Program-made: the position numbers and the translations under genes
Notes under the pieces: model-generated
The model's database searches: none
Told to the model about the DNA's origin: nothing
Seen by the model: the letters and a program-made list of their open reading frames with translations, nothing else
DNA from: Macrostomum lignano
Lineage: Eukaryota
Direction of reading: 5' to 3'
Assembly: GCA_002269645.1 (NCBI GenBank)
Contig: NIVC01000571.1
Span: 186,001-250,000 of the forward strand
Length of the DNA: 64,000 nt
Shown: in pieces, positions 8,891-56,426 of the stretch
Layout of the letters: the number at the start of each line of letters is the position of its first letter
How positions within the stretch are numbered: the stretch's first letter is position 1

Positions 8891-10696
8891 GTATCCTTGT
8901 GTTTTTGAAAAAAAAGAGATTTATAATAAACATCTTTGTCTAACAATTTTACTTGAATAAGGTAATAATTTTTCTTCTTCACTTATTGGCCACCTTAAAT
9001 GGGGACTTTAGATTGCTGAGATATCAGGTAGGCTTTCTGGGGGAATGGCTAAAATGGTAAGGCTTATTAAAAATGCTCAAAGTTCAAGGTTCACTGGAAG
9101 AATTGCTAAGATTTCAAGGCTTACTAGGGGGTTTCTAAGATGTTAAGGCTTAGTGGGAGAATTGTTGAGATATCAAGGCTTAACAAGGGGAATTACTAAG
9201 ATATCAAGCTTGAGGTCTAAAGCTACTTACATATAGTTTTTTTCATTTTTTTAATTCTGAACAATTTTATTTAAGTAAAGGTGATTTACTAAACTAAATT
9301 AAGAATGCTTTTAATTTTTTTCATTTTAAAGGATTCTCATAAATAATTTTCATTCTTTGCTTATTGGGCATCCTAAAAGGGGGCACTAGATTGCTTGTAG
9401 AATCTAAGACTATACAAAAACTTAAGTATCAATTTATATAAATTATCTTAATAACTTTTTTTAATTAGATGTATGGATTATACAAAGCATTTAATTCAAA
9501 TAATAAAGAAGTAATAGCAAATTATTTTTAAGACGAAAGGAAAGAAGTCTATTATAGTTAAGTTAACACTATTTATCTAACCTCACCTTTTATGATTTTT
9601 AGCTATTTGCCAAAGATCAAAGTCAAATAGTAGTTACAAGGGTAATACTTTAGATAAGAAGGACATTAAAGACTGCCATCAAAAACCAAAAGAAAATAAT
9701 TTCTAAGAATGCTTGCTATAGACCTATTTTTTTGATAAATTAAATTAAGTGTGTAAATCATTAATTGTATACCTTATGTATTGAGGAACTTTTGGTTTTT
9801 AATTGCAATTTATACTGAGTTTTTCTAGGGTAACTCTTAAGTTTTTGGGGTTTAGGACTAAAGCAATAGATTTTTCACTTTAAGTGCACATTGTGTAAAT
9901 AGAATATATAGAAGGCTAAAGTCAAAATTAATATTTTAATTTTTAATGCAAATGGAGCTCTTAAGTCCTTAAGGTTAGATACTCTAGTAACAGAGCCATG
10001 TGCACATTGCACATATAAAGTGATAAAGGCTAAATTTAAGGTTAATGTTTAAATTCTCACTTCAAAAAGAGCTCCTAAGTCCCTAGATTTAGGAACTCAC
10101 AATAAAAATTTATAGTACTATGTGCACATTGTAATCTATTAATCTATATAACCCCTATTAATCTAGGTAATAGGGGTTAAAGTTATAAATATATTTTTTC
10201 AATACAAAGGCCTAAAGTAGTCCTTAATCTCTATAGTCAAGGACTCAAGCAATATATTTTCTATGCCACATATGCATTTTTGGTTAGTATAGTAAGGGTT
10301 GAAGTTAGGATAAATGTAATATTAGCCATTCTTCTTATGCAATAAGAAGCATTCTTCTTGTGCATTCTTCTTGTGTATTCTTATGTGATATATTAAAATT
10401 ATACTATTGCCATTGGATTTAGTATCATTAAAAGTTATTGGAAGTTATTAGAAATCAATTAACTATAGGTAGATAAGATAGAACCATTATAGATAGACTA
10501 TGAGAAAAATTATGACTATAAATATAGTAAAGCTATAGAAAGCAAGGCAAATGCACTTATTAACAATAAAGAGCTAGCATTAGTCAAAGCTGGCATTAAT
10601 ATATAAGAGCAAGCAAGCAATACTATGTTTATTTCATAGCCTCATCATACAAAGAAAAAGTATGCTCAGAGTCCCATCCTAACCTAATCAACCCTA

Positions 10697-10956
10697 AGAC
10701 TCTTCACATTACCAATTCCAGAACCAGAATCAGTTCGGATCTTCCAAGAAAAACAGCAGTATAACTATTTAACTCTGTTGATATTTGACTGCCTTTAACA
10801 GCCTTACTTTGCAAAATTTTTAACTTTCTTCTTGGCAATTTTCATTCAATAATTAAGAGTTTATAGCAGGTATATCCCACTAGTTAAGGAGACAAAAAAT
10901 TATACTTTACAAATTGGTTCTGGTTCTAGAACCAGAACAAGCAATATGAAGAGCCT
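10697..10956 (-). mobile_element. ~260-bp MITE family B, copy 1
   Basis: Reverse complement of 59831-60102. Degenerate TIR AGACTCTTCACAT / ATATGAAGAGCCT. Flanks CCCTA (10692-10696) / CCCTT (10957-10961), a 4/5 match consistent with a 5-bp TSD. Confidence 0.75.
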
Positions 10957-11439
10957 CCCTTACTAGCCAATCATAAAGCAGAGTTAGCCAATCATTGCTT
11001 CATAAATAGAGCCAATTATTTTGGAGGCTAAAAAACAATAAAAATAGGGCTTAAGCTAATTGGCTTAGGTGTACTTATCATATATGTAAGGGTGATTCAA
11101 ATGAACAAAAACAAAGAATGAAATATATTGGATGACTCAACAAACCTTGTAGGTAAAATGCATTTGTAGTTCAAGAGTGCCCAGTACAATAGTAGTTCTA
11201 AATGAACATTGACTGCAAAAACCAATGTGTTTCAACCCACTAGGGCCATGATCAAGGTATATTATTTATCAATCAACCAAACACTTAATATAAATAAACA
11301 ATTGTACTATATAGTGTCAAATTGAAAATGGAAGATAAAAAATATACAAAAGAACATAAAAAACTGAGGGTTGAAGTTAAGCAAGAAGAGAGAGTGAGAG
11401 AAGGAAAAATAAAATGTACATGCAAAGAACTGGTCAATC

Positions 11440-12080
11440 TCAAAACACCCTAAGAAGGTGACCCGCACCACTATGCAACAGCTGCACATAGAGGCTTGGG
11501 TTTTGAGCCTTGAAATGCAGTGCTTGCAGAATGCCAAGCTTGAATTCAGAATTGGAACAATCAATAATCTTAAAAGCTCAATCTGTTCTCTGTCACAGCA
11601 GCTCTTGCACTCCAGAAGGTGGTCCTAGATTGCAGATTTCTTTAGCCAATGCTTCCTAACATTGGTGCCTTTTGGTTTTTCCCATGTATAAGATATTCTG
11701 ATCATCAGAACAACAAAATTTATACATAACACCTGCAGCCAAAGCATGAGGAACATAGGACTTGAGCTTGCTAACAAATTGACCCACATTGACTAAATGC
11801 AAAAACAATCCTAATTAATACAAGGATTGAAATATATCCTCAAAGTGTAGTGTTCCACGAACGTAGTGTTCCACTATTTCCAAAAATATCTCTCAAGTTT
11901 CTTTTTCAACAAGTTAGATAGGATACCATTGAAAGACAAGATCATTATAGGGTCATCCAGCTTTTCACCATGATTCTGCTGCAACCTGCTAGTAACCTGC
12001 TAGTAAAACAACTAATGAAATTGTTAGGGTATCCATTCATGCTGAAAATCCTCTAATCAAATTGTTCACCTCTTTATCAA
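11440..12080 (-). mobile_element. Decayed Penelope-like retroelement fragment (RT C-terminus/linker + GIY-YIG endonuclease)
   Basis: Minus-strand pieces across stops and frameshifts: FDKEVNNL / IFSMNGYPNNFI (NGYP motif), FNGILSNLLKKKLERYF, IRIVF, then KSYVPHALAAGVMYKFCC..IYTWE..KSAI*DHLLECKSC. This is the order seen in Penelope-like elements. Confidence 0.8.
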
Positions 12081-13557
12081 ATGTGGATTCACCTCTTTAT
12101 CAAAGGAAAAATTGTAGTCAATGTTGATTTTAAGCTTTATTTATTTGCTATTAATTAAGCGAGCAACTCTACCACAATAGTAGTTCTATCTGGCATGTAC
12201 CAATTGATACAAATTACACATGACTTGGTTAACTTAGTCAATCCAAACAGTCATGATTGCTTACCTTTTAGGCTTTTTTGTTATATATTTTAATTGTTTA
12301 AACAATGTTATCAAGTATAAAAGATAGAGAATTGGGTCATTACTAGTCATTAATTTTACCAGAGTAAGCAAGTAGCTCCTAGGTTCCTACTTGTACTTTT
12401 ATTACTCGACCTTTCAAGTATTGTATCGTAAAATATATTTCATAGATTGTATTGAATTCACTTACATTATAGATGAAAAAATTAGTATCAATAGTTATAG
12501 TATTTTAAATGCACTTTTGAACAGTTTTTAAAGAATTCGATATTAAAAATATGTTGACTTTCTATTAAGTAAAAGTAATTTGATGGCAACTGTTTTGTGT
12601 AGTATTGATATGATCTGCCTCAGACTGAATAGTTGATATATACTATTAGATATAAATTAGTATATGGATTTATTTATTCATAAATATCTATTCTGTTGTG
12701 ATTAAAATAAAGACATAAACATTTTGATTTAAACTCATATATAACACAATGGACCATATTGACTAAATAGATTATGATCTTTAAATTGTTTTTATTAGAC
12801 TTGATACTGAAATTTTTACTGAAATGGCAATCTAATTTCATTTATTTCAAAATAATTTGCATTTTCTCATTTACCTACTATAGCTTTATTAGATAAGCTT
12901 TTATTTATAAGCATTGGTATCTTTGAAAGTAGTATAGTTAGCACATCAGTTCTAATACAAACCAAAACTGTCTAACAATAATTTATTTAAGGCTTTCAAT
13001 TGAATACAGGCATAGTTATGGCATAGCAATAAAGCAAAGACAAGCTGCTATGCCTGTATAGCAGCCATCTTTTAATTTTTGCTCAACTATGATTTCATCA
13101 ATACTATTTAATAAACAGTGGTGTTGTAAATAAATTTTCTTTGAAAACATTTCATTCATACCAAAGCACAAGTGCAAGGATATTGTCAATGGCCTCCTAA
13201 TGTTGAGACAATGGTTAAAATGGGATTTTATTGTAGCTAGTTACTGGGCATAAAACTGACTGCTTCAGTACAATGCAGCACACATTGTTTTTAAATTGCA
13301 ATGAACAACAATAAAAGTTTATATACTGGGGTCAATGAGTGTTATATACTGGGATGCATGCTCGCAATATCGATAGGAAATGGTGTGAATTTTAGTCATA
13401 TAGTTTTTGTGCATATTTACTTGAAAATACTTGTTGGTCGTGATTTTTTATGCTTTTATAATACTACTAAATAAAGTACCGACTTCAGAGGTTTAAGTTT
13501 TTTGTGTCAGAAAATAGTAGAACATAAAAGCCGACCAACTCAGTATTGTCCAGATGC

Positions 13558-15222
13558 CTATGCCAGCTCAGCGTCTGCTGCAGATGCTGCTTGCAGTTGC
13601 TGATTCTCCTTCCGCCTCACACTGAACAGTTGAATGAAAAGCTCAAAGAATTCAAAGGTGCTGATAATGGACACGCCCAGCCACAGGCCGAGGATACCGC
13701 CGATGTCGGAGGCCAAATTTCGGGCCAGATAGGCCCAGTTCTCGCGCACAATGTTGCCCATTGTGGAGTGACTGTACACTGTGAGCTTGGCGAACCGCTG
13801 CAGCGCGTACGGGTCATTTTTAAGGTGCTCCATGATCTCTTCCAGCACTTCAGTACTGTCGCCCCTGCTCCTTGCCTCGTGCATTGTCCTCTGAGTCGCC
13901 TCCCATAGCGCCTGGCGCGTCTCGTTGGCATCATTTGGCCATTTGTTCTGCATCACCCGCATCTCGTAGCGAGTGTTGTTACACTTCAGAGGGCAGTAGC
14001 TGTCTTTTTTCGTTTTCTTAGCCGATACTTGTTTGTGAATTTCATTGATGGCGTTGTCGTGGCACTCTTGTTTCTCCCTAACTGAGCTACTGTCGTTCGA
14101 TTTTGCGCCCCTACTTTGCTTGAGTCTCTCCTCGTTGATGTGGTGACAGAATGTGATGTTGTGGCGGGTGATGTTCCTAAACTTAGCCGGCAGAGGCAGG
14201 ATTTCGGAAACGCAGCGGCAGCTCTCGTTCAAAAAGTTTTGATACAAATTGACCTGGCAGTCCCTGACGCTGTACCTGTATTGAGTGACCTTTCCGTATC
14301 TATCCACGAATTCTAATGGCTGCAGGCTTTCCTCTTCAGCGCATTTTCTCAGCACCACCTCTTCAGTGTAGCCTAGTTGTACGTAGGTGCACGCATGCTC
14401 TTGTACATAAAATCCTTCGAGCATCTCCGGTCGCGTCCCTTTTTCGTGTATGACAGCTCGGAAGCCTTTGGAGTATCTCAGTGAATCTTCCTCGCTGATG
14501 AAGTTCATCATATCTCCGACATACATGATCACACTGAGGCCGCCGTCTCTTTCGCCTCCCACCAGCAGATGCCGCTCCCTTGGCGAAAATGTAAAGCAAC
14601 TGAAGTAGTTTGGATCAATGTACTCCGTGAAGTTTATGTATGAGCAGATTGTTCCGGCAAAATCACAGTGTAGAATCATCTCCTGGCTCTGTTTCGTGAT
14701 GTTCACCTCGTGCAGATACGACTTTAGCGAGTTCAGCAAGTCGCCGTTTATCTCGCTGTCACTTTCGTTGTTTGGATCCCAGAAGCTGCGTATGTCAGAC
14801 ACTAGCTCCTTTATAGGCTTGTTGAGACTTCTAATTTTTGGATTGCGTTCGTAACGCCGCAGACTAAAGTGGCTGGTGGCGCAGATGCTGATGTCGGGGA
14901 ACACAAAATTGGTGCTGTAGACACTTATCTCAGTGTTCACTGGCCCTTCGTTAAATCGGCTAAAGAGCGAGATCAAATGAGCGCTGAAGCCCGAAAATGC
15001 AGTTATAATTATGAGCAGCCACACGATCCTGTGAAGAATGCTGGAGCCTTGAAAGATTTTATGAAACCCATGCGCTGATGTGCTCTCGCAGAACTGCTTT
15101 AGCAGCTTCTTTGACGGGCTTTCCCCAAAGCCGTCTCGCCGCATCTTCTCCACCATCTTAGAGAGCTTGTTCGGTCTCGAGTTGCCTGCTGATTGTCTTT
15201 TTTCTGACGAATTGGTTGCCAT
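13558..15222 (-). CDS. DEG/ENaC/ASIC-family amiloride-sensitive cation channel subunit, single exon, 554 aa
   Basis: Pre-TM1 TSAHGF (HG motif), TM1 IVWLLIIITAFSGF, post-TM1 FPDISIC, C.F.G..C and FSCFTF, Cys-rich thumb, TM2 LASDIGGILGLWLGVSII (GxS filter). ATG at 15220-15222 and uninterrupted ORF. Confidence 0.95.
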   Translation of the reverse strand: MATNSSEKRQSAGNSRPNKLSKMVEKMRRDGFGESPSKKLLKQFCESTSAHGFHKIFQGSSILHRIVWLLIIITAFSGFSAHLISLFSRFNEGPVNTEISVYSTNFVFPDISICATSHFSLRRYERNPKIRSLNKPIKELVSDIRSFWDPNNESDSEINGDLLNSLKSYLHEVNITKQSQEMILHCDFAGTICSYINFTEYIDPNYFSCFTFSPRERHLLVGGERDGGLSVIMYVGDMMNFISEEDSLRYSKGFRAVIHEKGTRPEMLEGFYVQEHACTYVQLGYTEEVVLRKCAEEESLQPLEFVDRYGKVTQYRYSVRDCQVNLYQNFLNESCRCVSEILPLPAKFRNITRHNITFCHHINEERLKQSRGAKSNDSSSVREKQECHDNAINEIHKQVSAKKTKKDSYCPLKCNNTRYEMRVMQNKWPNDANETRQALWEATQRTMHEARSRGDSTEVLEEIMEHLKNDPYALQRFAKLTVYSHSTMGNIVRENWAYLARNLASDIGGILGLWLGVSIISTFEFFELFIQLFSVRRKENQQLQAASAADAELA

Positions 15223-17035
15223 TAGCTGGTTATCTTGACTACTTGACCAGTGGTTTGGTTTGCTTTGTAAAAGTGAGTTTCAGACTCTACAAAGCCTGGC
15301 TTTACCTGTCTGTTCAGATTTTATCAGAGTTCTTGTCCACCTCTTGTCTTCCATTCCACGCAGCTATTGCCCACTCATCCCAGCCAATCTTATGCACTTT
15401 GGTCGGCCACTGACCCAGTTTTCCCTGGTTGGCTGGGACGAGCCCCGGCTGTTCATGATGCCCCAGCTGCATTGGAATCGAGAATTGGGACTCCCGGAAG
15501 TCAAGCCCTGCGGGGTTCCGGGAGAACAAATGCATTTCTACCTTTCCTCCTCCCATTGCAAAGGAGAGATAACTGGCAGTTCGTTAATTTTGCTTGTTTG
15601 CTTCGTGGGAGATAAAAATAGTTTATAAATTGCTCTTATTTTTGCCCAGAAAGAAATGAACTTTTGAATAAGCCGAGAAAATTAACAAATTAGGCTTTGC
15701 CAGATTATACCTTATATTGCAGTTGATTTGGGCTTTGGTTTTATTTTTGTAGCATTTTGAATTGACTGTCAAAATATCTCGTGCTGTTAGTCTCGGCTTT
15801 TTAAAAAGAAAAATCAAACACATTGTTTGCTTAACATCAAGCGCGCTGCAGATCTGTAGAAAACTGGGCTGCTGTCTCCATTCATGTGGAGTTGTCACGC
15901 GCGGTTTTGACATTTTACTGCAAACTTCTTGAATTTGATTGCTGTTGCTCCGAATGCTTTTGCTAGTTTCGATTGCTACCATCGCGGGTGTTTCTATCTA
16001 CAGACGTTATGATCTTTGCCAGCAGTAGTTGTACTTCTGTTGCTGTTTTACAGGTGTTTTTCTAATATTTAAGTCTGTCAGAAGCAATCAAGCAAATCCG
16101 CCACCCTAGTGTTTTGTCCAACTGTCAAAGTCGTTGATAGCCAGACGTGTCACGAGCCTAGCAATGGGCTGCGTTGCATCAACTGGCACCGCTTGCTTAT
16201 GTATACCGGTAGAACAGACAAATTTGCAATTGCAAAAATTCTTAAAGGGAATGTCTGGGTTTGCTTTGTGTAAGCCTCCGATTAAGTTAAAATGTCAGTC
16301 TGTACTGCCTGGGATCTGCGACCTTAATAGTTTGAAGCATTGGATAGACATTCTAAGCACTACTGTCACTTTTTTGCTACCTCTGTACTAGTGGCAGTCA
16401 GCGCCAGACGCCTCTTGTTTTGCAGCAGCACCCTCTTGCATCGCAATAAATGTGCTGCGGCAGCCTCTGCTGATACCGGATGCTAGGGGAGTTTCCTGGA
16501 AATGGTTTCAATTATCTATCTACCGTTTCTGATTAATGCATTGGTGTCTGACCCAAAGGCTAAAATAACTCTTGGAAAATCGCAATCGTTGGTTAAAAAC
16601 GGGAGTTGGCAAAGCGCACCGTTAAAGCAATTTAATATCTTAGCAGAATTCCGAAGTGTCGTAATATAAACTAGAGTGTACGACGGTGACCTTGGACGCT
16701 TCTGCAATTACGATGCTGATAAAAATTCGTAATTCCCTCAAATCGAATAGTGTGCAGCTCAAAAAAAGAAATGGATCGGTCCTAGTGCATTCAGTTAAGT
16801 ATAGCATTAATTAGGCTAAGAGAAACTAAATAAGGACAATTATTAAAGCGGGCGTTTGCGTTCTTGAAAAATTCATGCGCATTTGTTTTACTTGAAATAA
16901 AGTCAAGACAAAACTTTATTTTGGTTCAAAAGCACGAAAAACTTTACCGGCTAAAAAGCCTGCTTTATATTAAACTATTTGTTATTGATCGGCATACTCA
17001 CCGCACCCCCCAACCCGCGCTAGCAAGTACATGCA

Positions 17036-17057
17036 GCGAGAGAGAGAGAGAGAGAGA
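17036..17057. repeat. (GA)n microsatellite
   Basis: Run of GAGAGA. Confidence 0.8.
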
Positions 17058-17105
17058 GCAAAACAACTCTACCTAGCCCCGCCCCCAGCGCGCACGTAGG
17101 CCAAG

Positions 17106-18081
17106 CTATCACATTATCATACAGTCTAGCCAACAAGTGAGTCAAAATAATGGAGATTTTACCATAGACAATTGACAATCAGGGTGCAATAATGCGCCAA
17201 AAATGCACGCTGGCGGCTTTCAGCGTGCAATAATGCAACAACACAAACTTTATATTTTACGAAAAGCAAACGTAGCAAATAGTTGAACATTTTTAACGAG
17301 CTCTTCGTCTAGTAGTCAGTGCTCTAGTAGTAACTCGAAAACTCAGTAACTCACTCAGTACTCATCAGTACTCACTGATCACCGAATTTGAAGTTGCAAT
17401 TGCTGAAACTACCACTCAGATGAATATGTAGCTCCGGTCGAACAGTATCGGCCGAAGATGCTTGAACGTCAACCTTGACATTTTGGACTGACGTCGTCAT
17501 TCCAACACTTGCCACCCGCTTTGGGACCTCGGAGATAGACGTAGCATCCCCCGCCGAATCCATATCGCCAGATGGTCCGACGATAGCCACAGACTTATCG
17601 TTGGTCGCAGAAGAGGAACTGGCTCCATACAGCGATGCTGACAACACGTCGGACATCTTGCCCTCGTCCTCCTCATCTCCTCGTCCTGTCTGTCGACAAT
17701 CGCTTGCAGTTCAGTTGTGGAACCTCCAACATCCGGAATTGATTCCGAGTCTTCACCCTCCACCAAGGGAATCAGATTGAACAGTTCTTCCAGAGTAGGT
17801 AGGAGCGGCTCATCATCGAACATCGTCCGCTCGATCAACGAATTTCTGTCCATGAGCTCTACATGCTTCTCGATTTCCGCCGTAGTCAAGCCGGTTATGC
17901 AATTGTCCGGGAATTGAGACAGATGAATCATGTTTTCAAATGAACGCACACTGAGACGAACAAATATCGCGCTGTAGTGGAGAGAAAGATATTCCTTGCC
18001 TCCCTCAACCCTGTTCTTTGCAAATTGCCATAGACAAAAATGAATAGCCACTGTTGGCTAGTCTATATGATAATGTGATAG
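17106..18081. mobile_element. Putative ~980-bp inverted-repeat-bounded element of unknown class
   Basis: CTATCACATTATCATAcAGtCTAGCCAACA (17106-17135) matches the reverse complement at 18052-18081 in 28/30 positions. AAG flanks both sides (possible 3-bp TSD). Confidence 0.5.
17372..17931 (-). pseudogene. Frameshifted ORF for an acidic, Ser-rich ~186-aa protein ending LSGSFSNCNFKFGDQ
   Basis: ORFs 17497-18051 and 17372-17656 join into one protein-like frame (...IVDRQDEE[D]EEDEGKMSDVLSASLY...) if one base is restored near 17675, inside a GAG/GAT/GAC run. Function unknown. Confidence 0.5.
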
Positions 18082-20097
18082 AAGCACGGCTTGCGCGTGC
18101 AACAACGCCATAGACACTCGTGGTCCTAGGCGTTGTTGCACTTGCAAGCCGTGCACTATCTTTCCATTGTTTAGCAATTTGACGATCATTATTCACATTT
18201 TTAATGCAGAACAATCCACTACTACAAACAATGCATTGTCTGTAGGATCGTCAAACAGAAAAACAATGCAAAGAATCAGCGGTCGCAGCACGTGACAACG
18301 ATTTGTCTATGGCTCGCGCCTACCGGCGCTCGCCAGACAATCGTTGTCACGCACTGGGACCGCTGATTATTTATCCATTACTACTCTACGTAAAAGTGCA
18401 GCGCATCCTCTATGGGAAAAAAGGGTCCAAGATAGCTGCGGTTTATCTTTGAAGGGGTGGTTACGGACTAGGGAAAGCGTAGGAGCGGTTGTATACAAAT
18501 GCTTGTAAAAGCAGATACCCAGATAGCGCTGTGTCTTATCCAGCTGAGGGTAAAGACTGACCCGACCTCCCACTGCCAAATGACCGGGCGATCGCTGGAG
18601 AGATTTCTGCGCACACTTTTGGGAACAAGAAAGGTTTGCAATTGAAGAGAAGGAATGGGAGAGGCTTGGAGCGGAAAAGCTGCTGATCTGCGGGTGTATC
18701 ATCATGGAGCCGGGAATAGCTAAGGCGCTAGTGCGTTTTTACGTACCCTATGCAGCGTAACTACAAAGAAATCTGGTCATTTCGTGTTCAGCGCGCTTGT
18801 ATTTTTGGAAGCTGCATTGGCTTTAGAGATTTGATTTATAAGTTGAACTACTTGCAAGGAGGCGGTTATTCATTGTGCTTACAGCAATAAAGCGCAGAGC
18901 GAATGACTTGCTTTATTTTTCTAGCTTGTAACGAAGTAAATTTACCAAATGATATAGTAATTACATGCATGTAGGCGCCCATAGCTGCTTTCTCTTGGAT
19001 AAAACACACGTGACATATTTCTGTCATGTGTTCGCTTCTGATTGCTTGGCCTTGGAACTAGCTTCAACGAATTGTCCTTTCGCCGATTTTCCATGGCATA
19101 TCTATCCCAGCAATCCTCGGCTGATTCATCTTAGGCTCGATTAACCCGTAGCCTTTCTTCGCCGGCTCTTTCGATGTAAACTTAAAAAATTTTCTTCAAA
19201 GAATCTTCTCTACCCCCCCCCCGACGCAGGCAGCTGGGCGGGATGGAGTGTATTGGCTCTGGTTCGGCCTGTTAGGCAGTCAGTTGTCGTTCCTACCCTC
19301 TCTTCTGCCTGCTTGATCTCGATGACATTTTCGATATCGATATCGGCTAGCCTTCACAAATCCTTCCGGACCAGCTGCCTTTTTTCCTCTCGATTTCTCT
19401 TCTGGCAGCAATATACAGGAAATCTTGGGGTATCCAACCGCCCTGTCTCAGTTTCTTGAACGCACCTCTCTTTTTCTGCCTCATTTTCCGCACCTGCTGG
19501 TTCGCATTTATTACCGCGTTTGCTGCGGCGGCACTAAATGTTTTGCGGTAGTACGAATTTTTTTGCTTTCGGCAGCAAATACAAGCGTAATTATATTGGG
19601 GGGAAGGGCGCGAACATCTGTTCGTATTTGCTGGCAGAAGCACCCTCAGGTGCCGGGCGGAACCCTTTTTTGCCTCGCATCTTCCAGTTGTCCGCCACTT
19701 GCTTTTCATCTCACTGCGCACAGACAGGAATTTGTTAGAATCGTCTTGCCGTGCGCTGTCTGTTCGAGCCGTTACATCATTGGCTTTAAATATGGCAATT
19801 TAAGCCATATTTGTCTAGCGAATCTGGAGCCTTGCTGCGTCCGTGTTATTTTAGTAAACCTCTGGGGCCCCACAAGCACCCGTAAGAACTATGTCTGGGT
19901 TTCAATTGCATAAGTACCTAGCTCTTGAAGTTTTGTATTATTGGAACTTTGCAGACTGTTTGAATCCCAAGGCGCTTCTTCCGAATTCCGGCCTAATCTA
20001 CGCAGCCTTGCTCTCTCGCTGGCTTTGCCAATTAGACACGCTGCTTAATGTACTGCGCTGCATAACTTTTCAAACTTTTCGGTTGAAAAAGCCTTAG

Positions 20098-20205
20098 GTT
20101 CGCAGCTCCTGCTGGGACTTCGCTTGGGGTCTCAGTAGATGATTGCCTGTCGGAAAGTCGCTGGAATGAACTGGGCCGGTCCAATTTCTCTGTGCTCCAC
20201 GAGCC
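20098..20205 (+). CDS. Putative upstream exon of the nucleotidyltransferase gene
   Basis: Acceptor CCTTAG at 20092-20097. The exon reads FAAPAGTSLGVSVDDCLSESRWNELGRSNFSVLHEP in the same frame as the main ORF. A weak donor GTGACG at 20206 would join in phase 2 to the AG at 20630-20631. Confidence 0.4.
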
Positions 20206-20631
20206 GTGACGCATATATACATGTCGCGGATTGGATTAGTTTGAATTATATTTTAATGTATCAAAACTTAAGAAACTCTGTTAGATAAAATGGAATTTGC
20301 CCGGTTCTTAGTACAGTTTTTTAGACATAAAGGCCAAGCTGTATTGTACCAGATAATGAACTGCAGTGCCCATCTAAGCAGACTACCGATCATTACTTAT
20401 CGTAAACTCGCGAAAGGCGCGTTCTGAATTTTTCATCCACTGACCGAATCGACCCATTAAACCCACACGCTGCCTCTAGCCCTAACGCAGGAGTTGAGGT
20501 TTTTTATAGCCTTAGTAGTTTTTAATATTACCGCATAATTTATGAATCAGTATAGTTAGTATGGGATTAAGACTTCATTGAGCCCTGCACCCTGCGCCTT
20601 TCCAGGAGCCAGTCTGTCTGGCGCACTGCAG

Positions 20632-22120
20632 TCCGGCCTGGGCCTTCGCTCTCGCAAAGTGCGACTCCCCCGATCGAGTTCGGCACGCACTCGCCGACCG
20701 CGTCTGGGGTTTTCCGCCACGCCGCCAGGGCGTCGAGCAGCCTGTCGATCTGCTGGCGAGTCTGGCGCGCGGCCAGGGCGGCTCCCCTAGTGCTGATCGG
20801 CGGCCGCTTGTCCTACTGATCAGCGCCTCAGGCAGTCGAGGCATTTGTGCGGCCGCCCTGCTGTCCGATAATGCTTTTGAAGAAGCCGCTGAGCCGTCTG
20901 CGGACACCTCCGGCCGGCTCTGGTGCCGCTTCCGCCTGGCCGATGTACTGCCAGACGTCGGGGTCTCCGACGACGCCGATTTGCCTCTGCTGGTGACGCC
21001 GTTCGGCGACGCGGTCGATACAGACGGTCGGCCGCTCGGCGAGTGCCGCAACCTGGCTGCGGTGAATGGCGTTTGCGGTTGCCGTCTGGTGCAGCGCCTG
21101 GCCGCCGACTTGGCCGACGCGCGGGCCGCCGCAGCGCCCGCACCGAGCCAGCTCGGCCGAATCGCTGGCGAGCGGAGCGGCGCCGAGCCTGACGAGCTGG
21201 CGGTCGCCGCCCGGTTGGCGCGCCGGCTTGGCCGCAGTCACGGCCGCGCCCTGCTGGCCTGTCCGGCCGGCAGCCGACGCTACAATCTGCACGGCCCAGC
21301 CAGCGACCACGACCTGGCCGTGGTCTACCGGGCGCCGCTCCGCTCGCTGCTCGGCCTGCCGGGTCTCCGACCAGCCGACAGCCTGCAGTCAAGCGGCCCG
21401 GCGGACCCCATCGACTGCCGGGCCACCGAGCTGGGCAGGTTCCTTGAACTGCTGCTGGCGGGGGACCCCAAGGCTGTGGAGTGTCTGTTCCTGCGGCAGG
21501 AGGACCTGCACTTCGGCCGGCCTGCCGACCGGCTCCGTCTTGCCTGGCTGTTTGAGTCAAAGCGGCGTTTCCTGACGCCCCGCCTGCTGAGGGCCTACCG
21601 CAGCGAGCTGGAGGGCGCCAAAGGACTGCGCAAGCTGGACAGGCTGAGGGCGCAGTGGCTGTCCACGGCTAACGAGGGAGTGGCAGGCGCAGCCGTAGAC
21701 GGTGTGACCCCAGGTTCGGTCGAGGAAGCAGCGGGCGGAGCGAAAGCTACCGCCCTGGGCGCGAGGCTGCGCAAGCTGTACTGCATTCTGCTCCGGCTGG
21801 CGGACTGCTGTGCGCACGCGGCCTCCGGCGAGCTGCCGGTCCGATTCGAGGCCGGGTCAGAGCGGCACCGCCTCCTCAGCTGGATCCGGTTCGGGCCGCC
21901 TGCGGCGCTCAGCCAGGCGGACGAGCTGCGCATGCGGGACGCCCTGCGCGATCGGCTGGCGGCTGCGTCGTCTGCGGCTGCCGCTGCAGAGGCGGCGGAA
22001 GCACCGGAGACGCTGGCGCGGCTGCAGGCGGAGGCCAACGACTGGCTGATTGAGCACCGGCTCGCCTGCCACGCTGATGGCGATGAGCGGCTGCTGGCCA
22101 GCGAGCTGGAGGGCGACTGA
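20632..22120 (+). CDS. RlaP-like / PF10127-type Pol-beta-superfamily nucleotidyltransferase, main exon (frame open from 20582; true start lies in upstream exons)
   Basis: LLACPAGSRRYNLHGPASDHDLAVVYRAP (GS at 21269-21274, DxD at 21305-21313), then TELGRFLELLLAGDPKAVECL, RRFLT..Y, KLYCILLRL, GELPVRF..R..LLSWIRFG and NDWLIEHR. This is the motif order of prokaryotic GSRAYG..SDxD nucleotidyltransferases. The track start at 20981 is a TTG, and the frame has no upstream stop until 20579. Confidence 0.85.
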
Positions 22121-22260
22121 TGGCCTTTTTTGGGCACATAGCAATTCATTCCATTCTGCTTTTTAATCATGTCTGTAGCGGCCAGGAAGCTGACACAGTT
22201 TCTCTTTGCTGCTTTACGACAGGGGCCACGTGAGGGGCTGGCAGGTTAGCCCTATTGTCT

Positions 22261-22830
22261 CTAACCTGACAGATTGCTCCACTCTTACCTGACAGACTCG
22301 TCTCTTACCTGACAGATTTGCCTCTTACCTGACAGACTCGTCTCTTACCTGACAGATTTGCCTCTTACCTGACAGATTTGCCTCTTACCTGACAGATTTG
22401 CCTCTTACCTGACAGATTTGCCTCTTACCTGACAGATTTGCCTCTTACCTGACAGATTTGCCTCTTACCTGACAGATTTGCCTCTAACCTGACAGATTCG
22501 CCTCTTACCTGACAGATTTGCCTCTTACCTGACAGATTCGCCTCTTACCTGACAGATTTGCCTCTTACCTGACAGATTTGCCTCTTACCTGACAGATTTG
22601 CCTCTTACCTGACAGATTTGCCTCTTACCTGACAGATTCGCCTCTTACCTGACAGATTCGCCTCTTACCTGACAGATTTGCCTCTTACCTGACAGATTCG
22701 CCTCTTACCTGACAGATTCGCCTCTTCCCTGACAGATTCGCCTCTTCCCTGACAGATTCGCCTCTTCCCTGACAGATTCGCCTCTTCCCTGACAGATTCG
22801 CCTCTTACCTAACAGATTCGCCTCTTCCCT
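22261..22830. repeat. 20-bp minisatellite (CCTCTTACCTGACAGATTTG), ~28 copies
   Basis: Period 20 is directly visible, with ATTTG-to-ATTCG and TTAC-to-TTCC variants polarised to the right end. Confidence 0.95.
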
Positions 22831-24346: not shown

Positions 24347-24414
24347 CTGACCCGGTACCTGCAAGGCCATCATTCCCACTCTCCGATTGCAGCGCAGCCA
24401 ACCACAGCCCAGCA

Positions 24415-25446
24415 ATGACCGCAACAGCAGCAGAAGCCGGCCTGGAGCCCATGGACCCGACGCTGAGCAGCCTGGTGCACCAGAGCCAGAATATGAAGTG
24501 GATCTTTGTCGGAGGCAAAGGCGGCGTAGGCAAGACGTCCACCTCGTGCTCGTTGGCGGTGCAGCTGTCCCGCGTGCGGCCCTCCGTGCTGCTGCTGTCC
24601 ACCGACCCCGCCCACAACATCTCTGACGCCTTCGACCAGAAGTTCTCCAAGACGCCCACCCTGGTGAAGGGCTTCAGCAACCTGTACGCCATGGAGGTCG
24701 ACCCCTCCGTCGGGCTGTCCGGCCTGCCCGACGAGCTGGTGAATGACGACTCTGGCGCGCTGCGCAGCCTCGTGTCGGAGCTGATGTCCGCGCTGCCCGG
24801 CATCGACGAGTTCATGTCCTACTCGGAGGTGCTGCGCCTCGTCGAGGACATGGACTTTAGCGTTATCGTGTTCGACACCGCACCCACCGGGCACACGCTC
24901 CGCCTGCTGTCCTTCCCGTCCACCATGGAGGCCTCCATGGGCAAGCTGGTCCGCTTCAAGAACCAGCTGGCGCCCCTGGTCGGCCAGCTGGGCTCCGTGC
25001 TCGGCCTCGGCAACATGCGGGCCGAGGAGCTCGGCCGCCAGCTGGAGGACCGCCTGCCGCTGGTGCGCCGCGTCAACGAGGAGTTTCGCAACCCGCAGCG
25101 GACCACCTTCGTGTGCGTCTGCATCGCCGAGTTCCTGTCGCTGTACGAGACGGAGCGGCTGGTACAGGAGCTCACCAAGCTCGGCATCGACGCGCAGAAC
25201 CTTGTGGTCAACCAGCTGCTGTTCCCCAGCCCCAGCAGGCCGCCCTGCGCCCTCTGCTCCTCCAGGCACAAAATCCAGCAGAAGTACGTGGCCCAGATGG
25301 AGGACCTGTACGAGGACTTCCACATCGTGAAGATGCCGCTGCTGGAGCGCGAGATCCGCGGGCTGGCCATGCTGGAGTACTTCTCCCAGTTCCTGCTGGC
25401 GCCCTACAGCCCCGAGACCGCGCCGCCGCTGCCCAAGCAGCTCTGA
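24415..25446 (+). CDS. GET3: GET3/TRC40/ASNA1 ATPase (tail-anchored protein targeting), single coding exon, 343 aa
   Basis: [16 protein letters not shown]-loop, [44 protein letters not shown] and the CxxC motif PCALC. Confidence 0.98.
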
Positions 25447-28891: not shown

Positions 28892-31800
28892 ATGGGTTCG
28901 CTGCTGTCAACCTCTAGTTCGCCCCGCGCCCAGACCGAGCAGAGCTGGGCCACCTTTCCGCCTAAGACTGGCGTACTGTTTACCGGGCATTTCTACCTTG
29001 GCGGCGACAAATTCGAATCAGTTGCCCGCGAGTCCTTCATCTTCGGCGAGCCGGCCGACCTGCAGTTCGTCAACAGCCAGCCGCTGCCCTACCAGCTGCC
29101 AGTTGGCCGACCCGCCGGGCACAGCCGGCCGCTGCAGGCGGTCGTCAGTCTGCGCAAAGAGACGGCGCGGTTCGTCAAGGCCGATTCCGGCGCGGAGCCG
29201 CTGCCACATCAGTCCTTTCACGTGGAGCTGGTGCTGGACTGTCTGGTGGACTGCGAGGTCTCCGTCTGGCTGTTTGTCCGCCAGTCCTTCAACGGCCAGC
29301 GGCTGGTTCTGGAGGCGCAGCATCCTTTGTACCCGGGGCCCGAGCGGCAACGCTTCTCCCGAGGCCTCGGCTGGGTGAGCGGCTCTGTGATAGAGCTTGG
29401 GGATCACAGAGCTTGGGGACACTGCTTAATGTACTTTAGGTTAAAGGGGTGGGGTGTGAAGAGTTTGGAGGAAGATGGAGTCTTGGAGAGGAAATTGAGA
29501 CTACAAAAGGGAGATGGAGTCTGGGAGATGCAGTTCGGTAGTGATAAGTCGAACCCCCGCCCGCACCCGTAGGTGTTTTCCTGCACCGAGCTCACCCTGC
29601 GGCCTACCGTATTCGACGACGCGTCGGACAGCTGCCAGGACGCCTTCCCTCTCGCGGTGCTGTGCGAGTCGCTGGAGTCCGGCCCCGCCAACCAGCAGCT
29701 GCTGCTGTGCTCGGCCGAGCGGCTGGCTGCCGACTCCGCCTACTCGCTGAAGGTGCTCAGGCAAATCACGGTACGTACTGGCTTGCTTAGACTGCAATTT
29801 TAGGCTGGCCTTATTTTTACCTCCGCATCCGGTGACGCCCTCCAGGTGACCCCTGTCCACATCATCATCCAGCCATGCTATCCAGGTGACCCCTGTCCAC
29901 ATCATCATCCAGCCATGCTATCCAGGTGTCTCCTGTCTATCTGATCATCCCGCCATGCTATCCAGGTGTCCCCTGTCCACATCATCATCCAGCCATGCTA
30001 TCCAGGTGACACCTGTCCACATCATCATCCAGCCATGCTATCCAGGTGACCCCTGTCCACATCATCATCCAGCCATGCTATCCAGGTGACCCCTGTCCAC
30101 ATCATCATCCAGCCATGCTATCCAGGTGACCCCTGTCCACATCATCATCCAGCCATGCTATCCAGGTGACCCCTGTCCACATCATCATCCAGCCATGCTA
30201 TCCAGGTGACCCCTGTCCACATCATCATCCAGCCATGCTATCCAGGTGACCCCTGTCCACATCATCATCCAGCCATGCTATCCAGGTGACCCCTGTCTAC
30301 ATCATCATCCAGCTATGCTATCCAGGTGACCCCTGTCCACATCATCATCCCGCCATGCTATCCAGGTGACCCCTGTCCACATCATCATCCAGCCATGTTA
30401 TCCAGGTGTCTCCTGTCTATCTGATCATCCCGCCATGCTATCCAGGTGTCCCCTGTCCACATCATCATCCAGCCATGCTATCCAGGTGTCTCCTGTCCAC
30501 ATCATCATCCAGCCATGCTATCCAGGTGACCCCTGTCTACATCATCATCCAGCTATGCTATCCAGGTGACCCCTGTCCACATCATCATCCCGCCATGCTA
30601 TCCAGGTGACCCCTGTCCACATCATCATCCAGCCATGCTATCCAGGTGTCTCCTGTCTATCTGATCATCCAGCCATGCTATCCAGGTGTCCCCTGTCCAC
30701 ATCATCATCCAGCCATGCTATCCAGGTGACCCCTGTCCACATCATCATCCAGCCATGCTATCCAGGTGACCCCTGTCCACATCATCATCCAGCCATGCTA
30801 TCCAGGTGACCCCTGTCCACATCATCATCCAGCCATGTTATCCAGGTGTCTCCTGTCTATCTGATCATCCCGCCATGCTATCCAGGTGTCCCCTGTCCAC
30901 ATCATCATCCAGCCATGCTATCCAGGTGTCTCCTGTCTATCTGATCATCCCGCCATGCTATCCAGGTGACCCCTGTCCACATCATCATCCAGCCATGCTA
31001 TCCAGGTGACCCCTGTCCACATCATCATCCAGCCATGCTATCCAGGTGACCCCTGTCCACATCATCATCCAGCCATGTTATCCAGGTGTCTCCTGTCTAT
31101 CTGATCATCCCGCCATGCTATCCAGGTGTCCCCTGTCCACATCATCATCCAGCCATGCTATCCAGGTGTCTCCTGTCTATCTGATCATCCAGCCATGCTA
31201 TCCAGGTGTCTCCTGTCTATCTGATCATCCCGCCATGCTATCCAGGTGACCCCTGTCCACATCATCATCCAGCCATGCTATCCAGGTGTCCCCTGTCCAC
31301 ATCATCATCCAGCCATGCTATCCAGGTGTCTCCTGTCTATCTGATCATCCAGCCATGCTATCCAGGTGTCTCCTGTCCACATCATCATCCAGCCATGCTA
31401 TCCAGGTGTCTCCTGTCCACATCATCATCCAGCCATGCTATCCAGGTGTCCCCTGTCCACATCATCATCCAGCCATGCTATCCAGGTGTCTCCTGTCTAT
31501 CTGATCATCCAGCCATGCTATCCAGGTGTCTCCTGTCTATCTGATCATCCAGCCATGCTATCCAGGTGTCCCCTGTCTATCTGATCATCCAGCCATGCTA
31601 TCCAGGTGTCTCCTGTCCACCTGATCATCCAGCCATACTATCGAGGTGTCCCCTGTCCACCATATTATCCAGCCACGCTATCCAGGTGCCCCCTGTCCAC
31701 CATATTCTCCAGCCATGCTATCCAGGTGTCCCCTGTCCACCATATTATCCCGCCATGCTATCCAGGTGTCCCCTGTCTACCTGATCATCCGGCCATGCTA

Positions 31801-33532
31801 TCCAGGTGTCCCCTGTCTACTTAGCTTATCTGTTTTATGCAAAAATGCCAAGCACTTTCTAGGCCAGCCTCATTCCAGCGAGTATTGCCCAGATTGGATC
31901 GTGAAGTTTTGAAACTCCATAATTTCTCTGTGCATGGAAAGCTTGCCCTGGGGCCAACGCACTTTGGCCACCAATTTGCATGCAAATTACCGTCTGCCTG
32001 CCCCGAGAACGCCTTGAAATACTGGGCGGCCCAATTGTCATTTTGTGCATCAAGTTTTTCGGACATGTGAAGTAGACTGGGGGCTTTAGTTAATACCCAG
32101 ATACCGTCTGTACCCCACTCGGCAGGTAATCGACGGCCTGCCGCTTGTCGTTCACGACATTTACGGCATCTCCGACCGCGAGGGTGGCGGCAGCGGCTCG
32201 CAGGCCGCCGCTCCGGCCGCTGCCGACTCACTGATGGATCCGGGCGATGCGGACTGCGTTGTGTGTATGGTGAAGGCCAGGGACACCGTCATCCTGCCCT
32301 GCCGCCACCTCTGCCTGTGCGACAGCTGTGCCGACTCGCTGAGGTGAGAGTTCGGGTAGACTGTGCAGAGTGGAGTAGGTTAGGGTAAGCTGTGTGCAGT
32401 GTGGAGTAGGTTAGGGTAGACTGTGTGCAGAGTGGAGTAGGTTAGGGTAGGCTGTGTGCAGAGTGGAGTAGGTTTGGGTAGGCTGTGTGCAGTGTGGCGT
32501 AGGTTAGGGTAGGCTGTGCAGAGTGGAGTAGGTTTGGGTAGGCTGTGTGCAGTGTGGAGTAGGTTTGGGTAGGCTGTGTGCAGTGTGGAGTAGGTTTGGG
32601 TAGACTGTGTGCAGTGTGGAGTAGGTTTGGGTAGGCTGTGTGCAGTGTGGCGTAGGTTTGGGTAGGCTGTGTGCAGTGTGGAGTAGGTTTGGGTAGGCTG
32701 TGTGCAGAGTGGAGTAGTTTAGGGTAGGCTGTGTGCAGAGTGGAGTAGGTTAGGGTAGACTGTGCAGTGTGCAGTAGGTTTGGGTATGCATGCAGAGTGG
32801 AGTAGACTGGGTGCACTGTTCCCAGGGGGAGTCCGCAAGCGAAGGTCTCTGCCCCCCCCCAGGTACCAGGCCAGCTGCTGCCCGATCTGCCGAGCGCCGT
32901 TCCGCGCGCTGCTGCAGCTGACGGTGCAGGCCGGCGGCGGCGCCGACCAGGCCGCGGTGCCCATACTGGAATTCGTGACCGCCCAGCGCCAGCCGGAGTC
33001 CTCGGCCTCGGTTTCCGCCGGGGCGTCGTCGTCGACCTCCGGTGCGCAGGCGGCGTCGGCGCGGCGGCCTGCGACCGCCCAGCAGGCCTGGGCCTCGCCA
33101 GACAAGCAGGCCGCCCAACCGCCGCAGCTGCCGGCCGCTCGGCGGGACAGCGGCAGCAGCAACAGCAGCGGCGAGGTCGACGACCGGCACTGCTGGGCGG
33201 ACTCCGAGTCGGATGAGCCGTCCGCCGCAGCCGCCGACGCGGCAACCGCGGGCCCCGGAGACTCGGCGGTCATCGCCTTCCCCATGGCCGAACTGGACCG
33301 TAGCGCCGCCGCCGCCGCCACCACCGCCGGGCTGCTGCTGGTTGACGGCGACGCGGATCGGGGCTCGAGCTCGTGTTGCTCGTCGACGGAAAGCGCCAAC
33401 AGCCAGCGGCAGCTGCTGGCAGCCGCGGCAGCCCCGGGCGAGCCGGCGGCCGACTCCGGCAGCGCAGGCTCCGCCATCATCATCGCCGGCCGCGGGGGCG
33501 ATGATGAGTCGGACGAGTCGGACTTCAGCTGA
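28892..33532 (+). CDS. MGRN1: Mahogunin/RNF157-family RING E3 ubiquitin ligase, 4 exons, 522 aa
   Basis: Exons 28892-29374, 29573-29770, 32126-32343 and 32863-33532, all GT-AG and phase-consistent (1569 nt). Features: N-myristoylation-type MGSLLS start, FTGHFYLGGDKFE..FIFGEPADLQF, DIYGI, and RING CVVC..VILPCRHLCLCDSCADSLR/YQASCCPICRAPFRALL. MGRN1 versus RNF157 orthology cannot be separated. Confidence 0.95.
29841..31820. repeat. 40-bp minisatellite, ~49 copies, MGRN1 intron 2
   Basis: Unit TCCAGGTGACCCCTGTCCACATCATCATCCAGCCATGCTA, with interspersed variant units that diverge toward the right end. Confidence 0.97.
32356..32812. repeat. ~31-bp G-rich minisatellite, MGRN1 intron 3
   Basis: Unit AGAGTGGAGTAGGTTAGGGTAGGCTGTGTGC (period 31 at 32401/32432). 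Confidence 0.93.
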
Positions 33533-46556: not shown

Positions 46557-47149
46557 GGAGCCGAATGAAGCGAGAGGCCCGCAGTGGTTTTGGCACAGCT
46601 GTGGCTCTCCTTTGCTGCAGGGTTTGCTGCTGCGGAGCAATCTGTGCTGCAGATCTCGCGTCAGTTTATCTGCTTTTCATGCGGCCCTTTATCAGCTGGC
46701 CTGTGCCCCTGGCTTTGGCAGGGCAAGTGTTTCTGCCACATTTTGTGATAACACTTCGGAGCCAGCCGAGGACCGCTAAATTAGCCAGATTTTGGATTGG
46801 AAACCAACTGGCAGTCCTCGCTTAGGCAAATTAGCAGCCTCCGTTCTTCCGTGACTTCCGTGATTTATACTTGGGAACATTTAACCCGGAGTGAAGGTGA
46901 ACTCGGGGGATCGGAGTGAACTTGAAGGTTCCCGAGTGAACTGAGGATCAGGAGTGAACTTGAAGGGTCCCTTCAAAATTTGTCAAGGTTTTAACCTGTT
47001 AAATATACATGTATACATACTTAAATTGCAACTGATCCAGTTATGAGTATTTAAAATTAAGCTGCAATGAAAAAACCGGTCTTTGAAAAATTTGCTTTTC
47101 CTACGAGTGGTACGGTAACTTCTATTTGTCCTTGAAGTAAACTCGGAGG

Positions 47150-50668: not shown

Positions 50669-51030
<362 letters not shown>

Positions 51031-51524
51031 ATTGCACCAGATGAAATAGCAGCTGTGGCCGCCCCAAAGCTGAAATGACGCAAACTTTTAGCAGGCAAGC
51101 CGGCAGCCGCACACAGAAGAGCATGTGCTGCATTGCAGTGCTTCTACTGGATTTGTTAGAAGTGCAAAAAACGGCAAATGGCAAAATTTAAAACAATAAA
51201 TGGAGCAGTGAGTCACTCTAGGAAAACGCTTGGCCTCGGACCAGCCTCACAGAGTGCCTACTGAGATGAAATTGTTGAATCCACCCGACTCTCAGATTGC
51301 TCACTGTGCAGCTGGTCAGAGGGAATGGTGGCACAGGCAAATCAATAAATTCAGAGTATTTGTAGAAAGCAAAAATTCTGGAGAATTCAGTCAACCGGAG
51401 GGTTGGTGGTAAATTGCAGTTGCTACAATCTTGTTATATTGGCTGGCTGCTAGCCTGGGTCTTGGGAGACTCGAGTGTGGTGGACAGATTTGACACTGAT
51501 GATTTTGGAACCTGTTTTGTCTAT

Positions 51525-52170: not shown

Positions 52171-56426
<4,256 letters not shown>

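Follow-up and report, generated by a model that had tools for sequence, protein, structure and literature searches.

A single-exon gene of the flatworm Macrostomum lignano for a divergent YTH domain joined to an RlaP nucleotidyltransferase

We analyzed a 64-kb stretch of the genome of the flatworm Macrostomum lignano, hereafter the window, which is a base-for-base match to part of contig NIVC01000571.1 (533 kb) of assembly GCA_002269645.1. The window contains an intact gene with a single coding exon whose product consists of an N-terminal YTH domain, a linker, and a C-terminal nucleotidyltransferase (NTase) of the RlaP family (YTH-RlaP; Table 1). From these features, the protein is probably an NTase that acts on RNA 3' ends under the guidance of its reader domain, and its mRNA is probably made by spliced-leader (SL) trans-splicing. 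A preliminary description of the locus had reported the NTase as a prokaryote- or phage-type gene embedded in an animal chromosome and had left the N-terminal third of the protein and the missing start codon uninterpreted. As this third is a YTH domain, the functional inference changes.

RESULTS

The RlaP nucleotidyltransferase module

One open frame of 512 codons runs along the forward strand from 20582 to a stop codon at 22118-22120; the last preceding in-frame stop is at 20579-20581. The chance of such a frame at this base composition is ~1e-4. Residues are numbered below from the Glu codon at 20606, except that the residues of the Pfam match are counted in the 512-codon frame from 20582. 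The complete motif set named in the preliminary description was found in this frame, namely G222-S223-R-R-Y226-N...S233-D234-H-D236 (21269-21313), D270-C-R-A-T-E275 (21413-21430), and F279-LELLLAGDPKAVEC-L294 (21440-21487), and so was the helical C-terminal half. Within the first two motifs, G222-S223 is encoded at 21269-21274, S233-D234-x-D236 at 21302-21313, and D270 at 21413-21415.

The Pfam RlaP profile (PF10127) matched residues 208-303 with 29.5 bits (E = 7.7e-7; curated cut-off, 23 bits), covering profile positions 5-97 of 249. PHROG 388 ('nucleotidyltransferase') was also matched (E = 1.4e-12). The match to Pfam NTP_transf_2 was below the threshold, and no match to the protein was obtained in NCBIfam. 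In the NTase core, 30 of the 43 strongly conserved family columns were kept, all catalytic ones among them. G222-S223, D234-x-D236, and D270 were invariant over 14 aligned family members, and the invariant family residues retained in Macrostomum are G222, S223, R225, Y226, N227, S233, D234, D236, D270, E275, D287, and E292. The helical domain that follows kept 9 of 14 strongly conserved columns. Its K390, R397, W480, and R485 were invariant and are common to homologues whose own Pfam match spans RlaP positions 19-248.

In a Foldseek comparison with a viral structure library, the C-terminal two-thirds of the protein matched phage and giant-virus NTases, with a best E-value of 7e-10 and a highest TMt of 0.68, and the alignments spanned entire phage NTases of 230-320 amino acids (aa). 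A sequence search of PDB with the single protein and with the family profile returned no solved NTase relative, only YTH domains; the structure of Pseudomonas fluorescens RlaP (PfRlaP) is apparently not in the PDB set searched. Profile, motifs, and fold all place the Macrostomum protein in the RlaP family of the Pol-beta superfamily. The family assignment of the preliminary description, and the profile and AlphaFold/Foldseek comparisons that it had proposed, are thereby borne out, and its statement that the family is mainly bacterial and phage agrees with the literature (PMC12776372).

A divergent YTH domain in the N-terminal third

The N-terminal third of the protein, about 175 residues, is, as judged from profile comparison and a structural model, a divergent YTH domain, which is PUA-like. 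A hidden Markov model (HMM) of the YTH domains of 28 homologues, with Macrostomum excluded, scored 31.6 bits over residues 15-174, against 8.3 bits for the best of 1000 shuffles. Pfam found YTH followed by RlaP in all 10 homologues tested, with YTH E-values of 1e-13 to 7e-22. When the family profile was searched against PDB, Arabidopsis CPSF30-YTH (5zuu; 3.7e-15) and YTHDF1 (6e-13) were detected, as well as YTHDF2, YTHDF3, YTHDC1, and YTHDC2. Structure prediction with AlphaFold from the single sequence gave a pLDDT of 37, and AlphaFold2 (AF2) with the homologue alignment gave 79. All of the 50 best matches to this model in PDB were YTH domains (probability 1.0; TMt 0.5-0.71).

Two tryptophans of the aromatic cage, W34 and W106, are kept in Macrostomum. 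Through the family-profile match to YTH structures, they equate to W411 and W470 of YTHDF1. The YTHDF1 cage consists of W411/W465/W470, with D401 hydrogen-bonding the base.

A start codon predicted to come from the spliced leader

The open frame contains no ATG until about codon 445. Eighteen bases past the last in-frame stop stands cctgcgcctTTCCAG, followed by GAG, and the exon would begin in frame at 20606. The M. lignano trans-splice acceptor motif is [T/C]TNCAG, and the 35-nt spliced leader ends in ...TTGCATG (PMC8629364). In flatworms, AUGs carried by spliced leaders are known to initiate translation (PMC9851317, citing Cheng et al. 2006). A predicted TTCCAG acceptor lies exactly at this point, and with a leader that ends in ATG, trans-splicing would give an in-frame start. 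The initiator Met is thus most likely donated by the spliced leader, and the leader AUG plus 504 codons would give a protein of 505 aa. The preliminary description started the region at 20632, whereas the coding exon most likely begins at 20606.

The best-matching public record is 'hypothetical protein BOX15_Mlig012231g4, partial [Macrostomum lignano]', with 99% identity. Its GenBank coding sequence opens at 20608, 2 nt past the acceptor junction. From that point, the public protein (P0001) follows a different frame for 28 aa, skips 10 nt, and rejoins the main frame. These first 28 aa align with no homologue, whereas the continuous frame aligns and supplies the first YTH strand and the invariant K18. 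With an AUG donated by the leader at 20606, the 10-nt gap would be unneeded. We infer that the 5' end of the public model is out of frame, probably because the start codon comes from the spliced leader. A cis-spliced upstream exon could carry the ATG instead, but this is less likely, as the public model, said to be based on transcripts, itself starts at the acceptor.

Relatives of the protein in animals and protists

When 1.84 billion representative proteins were scanned exhaustively with HMMER, 163 matches were obtained at E<=1e-3 and 25 at E<=1e-10. Among the 150 best representatives, the source organisms of 30 were looked up by name. All 13 of the top-scoring representatives with a named organism were eukaryotes. 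Word-indexed homologue searches with the whole protein, the NTase core, and a 14-sequence alignment gave only the gene itself among the matches listed, probably because of low-complexity words. The best relatives are YTH+RlaP proteins of 450-1000 aa, matched at about residues 200-360 as in Macrostomum. About 40 eukaryotic homologues have this same arrangement, and several relatives are labeled 'YTH domain-containing protein' in UniProt.

The named relatives include seven mollusc genera (Biomphalaria, Pomacea, Elysia, Mytilus, Mizuhopecten, Gigantopelta, and Lottia), the brachiopod Lingula, the annelid Owenia, and the nemertean Lineus, which makes ten spiralians other than Macrostomum. A further relative is from the choanoflagellate Salpingoeca kvevrii. 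Protist relatives were found in the hemimastigote Spironema, the dinoflagellate Tripos, the stramenopile Platysulcus, and the amoebozoans Balamuthia and Stenamoeba, and the heterolobosean Pharyngomonas has an NTase only. The Macrostomum protein was aligned end to end with 13 YTH-RlaP homologues at 21-29% identity. The animal homologue genes sit on chromosome-scale contigs. In Lineus, the gene is 3.96 kb long with at least seven exons and lies between the genes for acetyl-CoA synthetase and an oxysterol-binding protein; in Owenia, it is 4.3 kb long and lies between LMF1 and a RasGAP/VPS9 gene.

YTH-RlaP is thus an uncharacterized eukaryotic sub-family that occurs in several spiralian phyla, a choanoflagellate, and diverse protists and whose database entries are all labeled 'uncharacterized' or 'YTH domain-containing'. 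No paper in the searched literature joins YTH with PF10127 or with an NTase. RlaP was reportedly named by Burroughs and Aravind in 2016 (NAR 44:8525); that paper lay outside the check, and an earlier mention of the fusion is possible.

Many protist relatives carry two RlaP modules (P0003, P0031, P0067, P0039, P0021, P0005, P0053, and P0072), in the order YTH-RlaP-RlaP or RlaP-RlaP. The second module is often degenerate, may represent a pseudo-dimeric arrangement, and was seen in none of the animal proteins. Some Biomphalaria glabrata models (P0002, P0152, and P0154) repeat an NTase segment, about residues 214-386 again at 386-530, which is not present in the 476-aa isoforms and is probably an annotation or assembly duplication.

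Origin of the Macrostomum gene

In the preliminary description, the gene was of prokaryote or phage type and had arrived by horizontal transfer or been patchily retained. A direct, recent acquisition by the flatworm of an RlaP gene from bacteria or phages would fit a family that is overwhelmingly bacterial and phage, with 'a small number' of eukaryotic members according to a preprint (PMC12776372), but the N-terminal YTH domain stands here in the arrangement of the eukaryotic homologues. The core matches PHROG 388 and phage NTase folds, and the phage-type RlaP protein P0018 (233 aa) is 42% identical over the core; yet P0018, the best phage-type match, scored 63 bits against 94 for the best animal match (Biomphalaria), and the YTH-less proteins of 230-280 aa typical of bacteria and phages score lower in general. 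The gene is intronless and GC-rich, but it carries a predicted trans-splice acceptor of host type, would need a start donated by the leader, and is located between host genes on a 533-kb contig, and the named top representatives are eukaryotic without exception.

Because of the shared fusion architecture, the ranking of the matches, and the host-type processing signal, a recent bacterial or phage import into M. lignano is disfavored, and we regard it as extremely improbable. With ten other spiralians among its nearest relatives and an intron-bearing Lineus gene, the prokaryotic framing is not supported; patchy retention, the other origin offered, fits better. The presence of the gene in several animal phyla, a point that had been raised beforehand, argues against recent horizontal transfer and leaves the family assignment intact.

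P0018 is the closest YTH-less RlaP. It is encoded on a metagenomic phage-like contig (L002) of small, tightly packed, same-strand genes, 5 kb downstream of an RNA ligase (PF09414; L002 1075-2214 and 6001-6702), which is the classical RlaP context.

A phylogeny, which the preliminary description had also proposed, did not settle the position of Macrostomum. Neighbor-joining (NJ) trees of the RlaP domain (Kimura distances and Dayhoff-6 recoding; 100 bootstraps each) gave it no stable place. They grouped it with spiralians in 0-1 of 100 bootstraps and placed it with protist long branches such as Platysulcus and P0051, as would be expected if the gene were not a spiralian orthologue and had been gained, already fused, from a GC-rich protist (prey or symbiont). 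The Macrostomum RlaP domain, however, contains 41% Gly/Ala/Arg/Pro, against 12-34% in the others, so that artefacts of long branches and composition are expected. As the sequence is a compositional outlier on a very long branch, the NJ placements are not trustworthy, and for a gene of 71% GC with this residue content the distance trees do not settle vertical versus protist origin.

The nearest sequences by pairwise score and recoded p-distance are spiralian (Biomphalaria at 94 bits; Lineus, Mizuhopecten, and Lingula). A protist-group HMM scored 155 bits against 103 for a spiralian HMM, but the former is the most diverse profile, and differences in diversity between profiles confound group-HMM scores. 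The Macrostomum gene lacks introns, in contrast to that of Lineus; GET3 and the channel gene nearby are also intronless, and M. lignano is intron-poor, with splice-site counts in PMC8629364 implying ~1-2 introns per gene by our arithmetic, so that the absence of introns is uninformative. No synteny is shared with Lineus or Owenia. The second RlaP module of most protist members is absent in Macrostomum, and the predicted acceptor is of host type. We consider transfer from a protist unlikely.

The exon number in Lineus and the length of ~4 kb of the Lineus and Owenia genes, which stand among ordinary animal genes, indicate long residence in animal genomes. We favor vertical descent with fast evolution as the likely history of the Macrostomum gene.

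Proposed function

The only biochemistry of the RlaP family comes from two Pseudomonas enzymes, which add 1-2 nucleoside monophosphates (NMPs) to RNA 3'-OH ends, with a preference for the broken end of a cleaved-tRNA mimic. In the RlaP structure, an NTase domain and a helical domain together form a cleft for RNA binding (PMC12776372). Since the whole catalytic set is kept in Macrostomum, the most likely activity of the protein would be non-templated nucleotide addition to RNA 3' ends. In the mechanism that we propose, the mRNA would be made by trans-splicing at 20605/20606, with the 3'-terminal AUG of the leader as start codon. The YTH module would bind RNA, across the family probably at N6-methylated or otherwise N6-modified adenines, and would thereby place the RlaP module at an RNA 3'-OH end for the addition of one or a few nucleotides through the two-metal site D234/D236/D270. 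Particular RNAs would in this way be tailed or repaired at their 3' ends under the guidance of the reader. The intact gene, the two domain assignments, the kept catalytic residues, and the spread among taxa are established by the analysis, and the start codon, the activity, the YTH ligand, and the biological role are predictions from it.

A signaling role like that of cGAS/OAS, raised in the preliminary description, found no support. Pfam detected no Mab21 or OAS domain, PADLOC gave no match for the Macrostomum protein or the Lineus homologue, and the only known RlaP chemistry is NMP addition (PMC12776372).

Several observations weigh against a reader-guided enzyme in Macrostomum. Most of them concern the YTH module, which is clearly the more eroded part of the protein. 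Pfam YTH (PF04146) did not match the Macrostomum protein at E<=1, and as YTH-bearing homologues made up the alignment behind the AF2 model, its fold match is not wholly independent. The module keeps only 11 of its 22 strongly conserved columns, compared with 70% in the NTase core; FSVN is changed to ISAS, GWHGYA to GICAAA, and the W of the 'V.W' strand to D. The third cage position (W465) lies in a variable insert and is not locatable by alignment, and at the position of the base-contacting Asp/Asn, D401 of YTHDF1, the family has Ser and Macrostomum Arg. Ligand binding by the pocket may therefore be altered or lost, and the ligand in Macrostomum is uncertain. The extreme composition of the NTase domain could reflect relaxed constraint. 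Furthermore, no RNA ligase or repair gene was detected among the larger open reading frames (ORFs) of the window, the only ones scanned, or the called genes nearby. The association with ligase and RNA-repair genes from which the name RlaP derives is thus not seen, the neighbors being a DEG/ENaC channel gene, a 111-aa ORF, GET3, and a RING-finger gene; in an animal genome, linkage of the operon type would not be expected, and so the association is not expected to apply here.

The erosion of the YTH module would also suit a decaying or re-purposed copy, in which the NTase works and the YTH module is only a generic RNA-binding part or scaffold, or in which the whole gene is drifting toward a pseudogene. 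The frame without ATG would fit decay, but would be accounted for by the predicted in-frame SL acceptor. The extreme shift to GC-rich codons at positions 1 and 2, the very long branch, and the low identity to relatives point in the same direction; yet a frame of 512 codons has stayed open, every catalytic and most structural NTase residues are kept, both alignable cage tryptophans are retained, and the public gene model is said to derive from transcriptome-based annotation. We consider decay or re-purposing improbable, and an NTase steered by its reader domain is the reading that we regard as probable.

A wider proposal, which is possible and is offered tentatively, is that YTH-RlaP constitutes an unrecognized class of eukaryotic epitranscriptome effectors, in which a reader of N6-modified adenines is fused to a 3'-end NTase and which is ancient in eukaryotes, persists in spiralians and many protists, and disappeared from the standard model animals. 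If so, marked RNAs, or cleaved tRNA or rRNA fragments with N6-modified adenines, would be tailed or repaired directly, and the loss from model animals would explain why YTH-RlaP has stayed unstudied.

Genomic surroundings

The YTH-RlaP gene is present as a single copy in the window, between a DEG/ENaC channel gene and GET3. From the identity of the window to the 533-kb contig and the host genes on either side, contamination and misassembly are rejected as far as an assembly can show. The statement that the gene is in an animal chromosome, contiguous with GET3, and no contaminant therefore stands.

Table 1. Features of the YTH-RlaP locus and its neighbors (positions in the window)
Feature	Position	Strand	Basis and remarks
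DEG/ENaC channel gene	13558-15222	-	Intronless 554-aa ORF; full-length amiloride-sensitive sodium channel; Pfam ASC, E = 5e-66
Predicted SL trans-splice acceptor TTCCAG	20600-20605	+	ccctgcgcctTTCCAG followed by GAG; pyrimidine-rich tract upstream; fits [T/C]TNCAG
Single coding exon of the YTH-RlaP gene	20606-22120	+	504 codons and stop; continuous frame; 99% identical to BOX15_Mlig012231g4; end-to-end alignment with 13 homologues
Divergent YTH domain, residues about 11-175	20636-21130	+	HMM of homologues, fold match (TMt 0.6-0.7); W34 at 20705-20707, W106 at 20921-20923
10-nt 'intron' of the public model	20692-20701	+	No GT..AG ends; probable annotation artefact
Ala/Pro-rich linker, residues 176-195	21131-21190	+	pLDDT <50 at 178-193; variable among homologues
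RlaP NTase core, residues 196-345	21191-21640	+	Pfam PF10127, PHROG 388, conserved columns
C-terminal helical domain of RlaP type, residues 346-504	21641-22117	+	AF2 model all-helical; Foldseek; conserved residues
111-aa ORF	Neighbor of the YTH-RlaP gene	+	Neighbor listed among the ORFs
GET3/ArsA	24415-25446	+	Intronless; 2.3 kb downstream of the YTH-RlaP gene
RING-finger gene	Neighbor of the YTH-RlaP locus		Listed with DEG/ENaC, the 111-aa ORF, and GET3

The YTH-RlaP gene has 71% GC, with values of 0.79, 0.56, and 0.79 at the first (GC1), second (GC2), and third (GC3) codon positions, and its flanks have 45-50% GC. GC3 lies inside the host range (0.94 in GET3 and 0.63 in the channel gene), which agrees with the host-like GC-rich codon usage noted beforehand; GC1 and GC2, however, are unusually high. 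GC-rich exons amid a lower-GC, minisatellite-rich background are the rule across the window. Flanking host minisatellites had also been described, and this is correct for the downstream side only. A 20-mer array at 22259-22830 (TRF) begins 139 nt past the stop, whereas at a TRF score >=80 no tandem repeat was found from 9208 to 22259.

In the 580 nt past the stop (22118-22700), canonical poly(A) signals are absent, both AATAAA and ATTAAA and their close variants. An Rfam scan of the window gave no match, and an SL RNA gene was likewise not found in it. The YTH-RlaP gene, the 111-aa ORF, and GET3 are all on the forward strand, ~1 kb apart, and may form an operon-like unit. An acceptor-type TTGCAG at 24387-24392 precedes GET3, whose ATG is 22 nt downstream, so that an SL AUG would be out of frame for GET3.

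Elsewhere in the window, the composition breaks between the first 13 kb (~31-34% GC) and positions 14000-64000 (42-64% GC). The low-GC part holds an 82-bp satellite of 19.5 copies, 99% identical, at 1771-3366, and the higher-GC part is dense in minisatellites with 15-45 bp units, such as those at 29841-31817 (40-mer, 49 copies), 47136-48088, and 53419-54410; (AGAC)90 is at 50671-51031. Toward the 3' end of the window, reverse-transcriptase ORFs at 60521-62464 (+) and 57098-57640 (-) (RVT_1, 9e-29 and 5e-9) indicate copies of retroelements.

DISCUSSION

YTH domains are the main readers of N6-methyladenosine (m6A), and RlaP has only just been given its first biochemistry, in bacteria. The natural YTH-RlaP fusion joins the reading of an RNA mark to RNA 3'-end chemistry; it is undescribed in the searched literature and is found in at least five phyla of animals, in choanoflagellates, and in several supergroups of protists. 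As M. lignano is tractable (RNAi, transgenesis, and a genome browser), the hypothesis is directly testable. The locus is also a clean flatworm example of a gene predicted to take its start codon from a spliced leader, with a public model probably mis-framed for that reason. It gives no case of a bacterial or phage gene captured by an animal, and its interest rests on the fusion and the phyletic pattern rather than on horizontal transfer.

Comparison with known systems

With terminal uridylyltransferases (TUTases), TENT/PAP-associated enzymes, and cGAS/OAS, the protein shares the Pol-beta superfamily and two-metal chemistry, and the TUT/TENT enzymes likewise extend RNA 3' ends with nucleotides that are not templated. 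It belongs, however, to a different family: no PAP-associated, Mab21, or OAS1_C domain was found, and only sub-threshold NTP_transf_2 or MTPAP-like matches were obtained.

The bacterial and phage RlaP proteins (PfRlaP and T4 NrdC.11; PMC12776372) are closer. They have the same Pol-beta core, G-S...S-D-x-D with a third Asp, followed by a helical domain with a conserved W...R in its last helix. The Pfam and PHROG profiles and the phage NTase fold are matched, and by analogy NMP addition to RNA 3'-OH ends would be expected. The Macrostomum protein differs in its N-terminal YTH fusion and in its location on a eukaryotic chromosome, where no neighboring gene for an RNA ligase, RtcA, or RtcB was detected. 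In addition, direct Pfam cover is confined to profile positions 5-97 of 249, and identity to phage members is ~35-42%, in the core only.

The N-terminal domain resembles, by profile and fold, the canonical m6A readers (YTHDF1-3, YTHDC1/2, and plant and apicomplexan CPSF30-YTH). CPSF30-YTH is the best match in both structure and sequence and also couples its reader domain to RNA 3'-end processing. The canonical readers recruit their effectors through low-complexity regions, a helicase, or zinc fingers, not through a covalently fused NTase. They also differ in the pocket, in which the third cage residue is not identifiable in Macrostomum and the base-contacting Asp/Asn is replaced by Ser in the family and Arg in Macrostomum.

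The eukaryotic YTH-RlaP proteins, such as those of Biomphalaria (XP_013065749), Lineus (XP_064635683), Lingula (XP_013409525), Owenia (CAH1787254), and Balamuthia (KAL6069548), form the group to which the Macrostomum protein belongs. The latter shares only 21-29% identity with them, is far richer in GC and in Ala/Arg, and has a much more divergent YTH domain, and its gene is without introns and predicted to depend on an AUG donated by the spliced leader. The extra degenerate RlaP module of several protist members is not present in it. In all these proteins, nevertheless, the domain order is the same, the length is similar, the alignment runs from end to end, and the same invariant residues are found in both modules.

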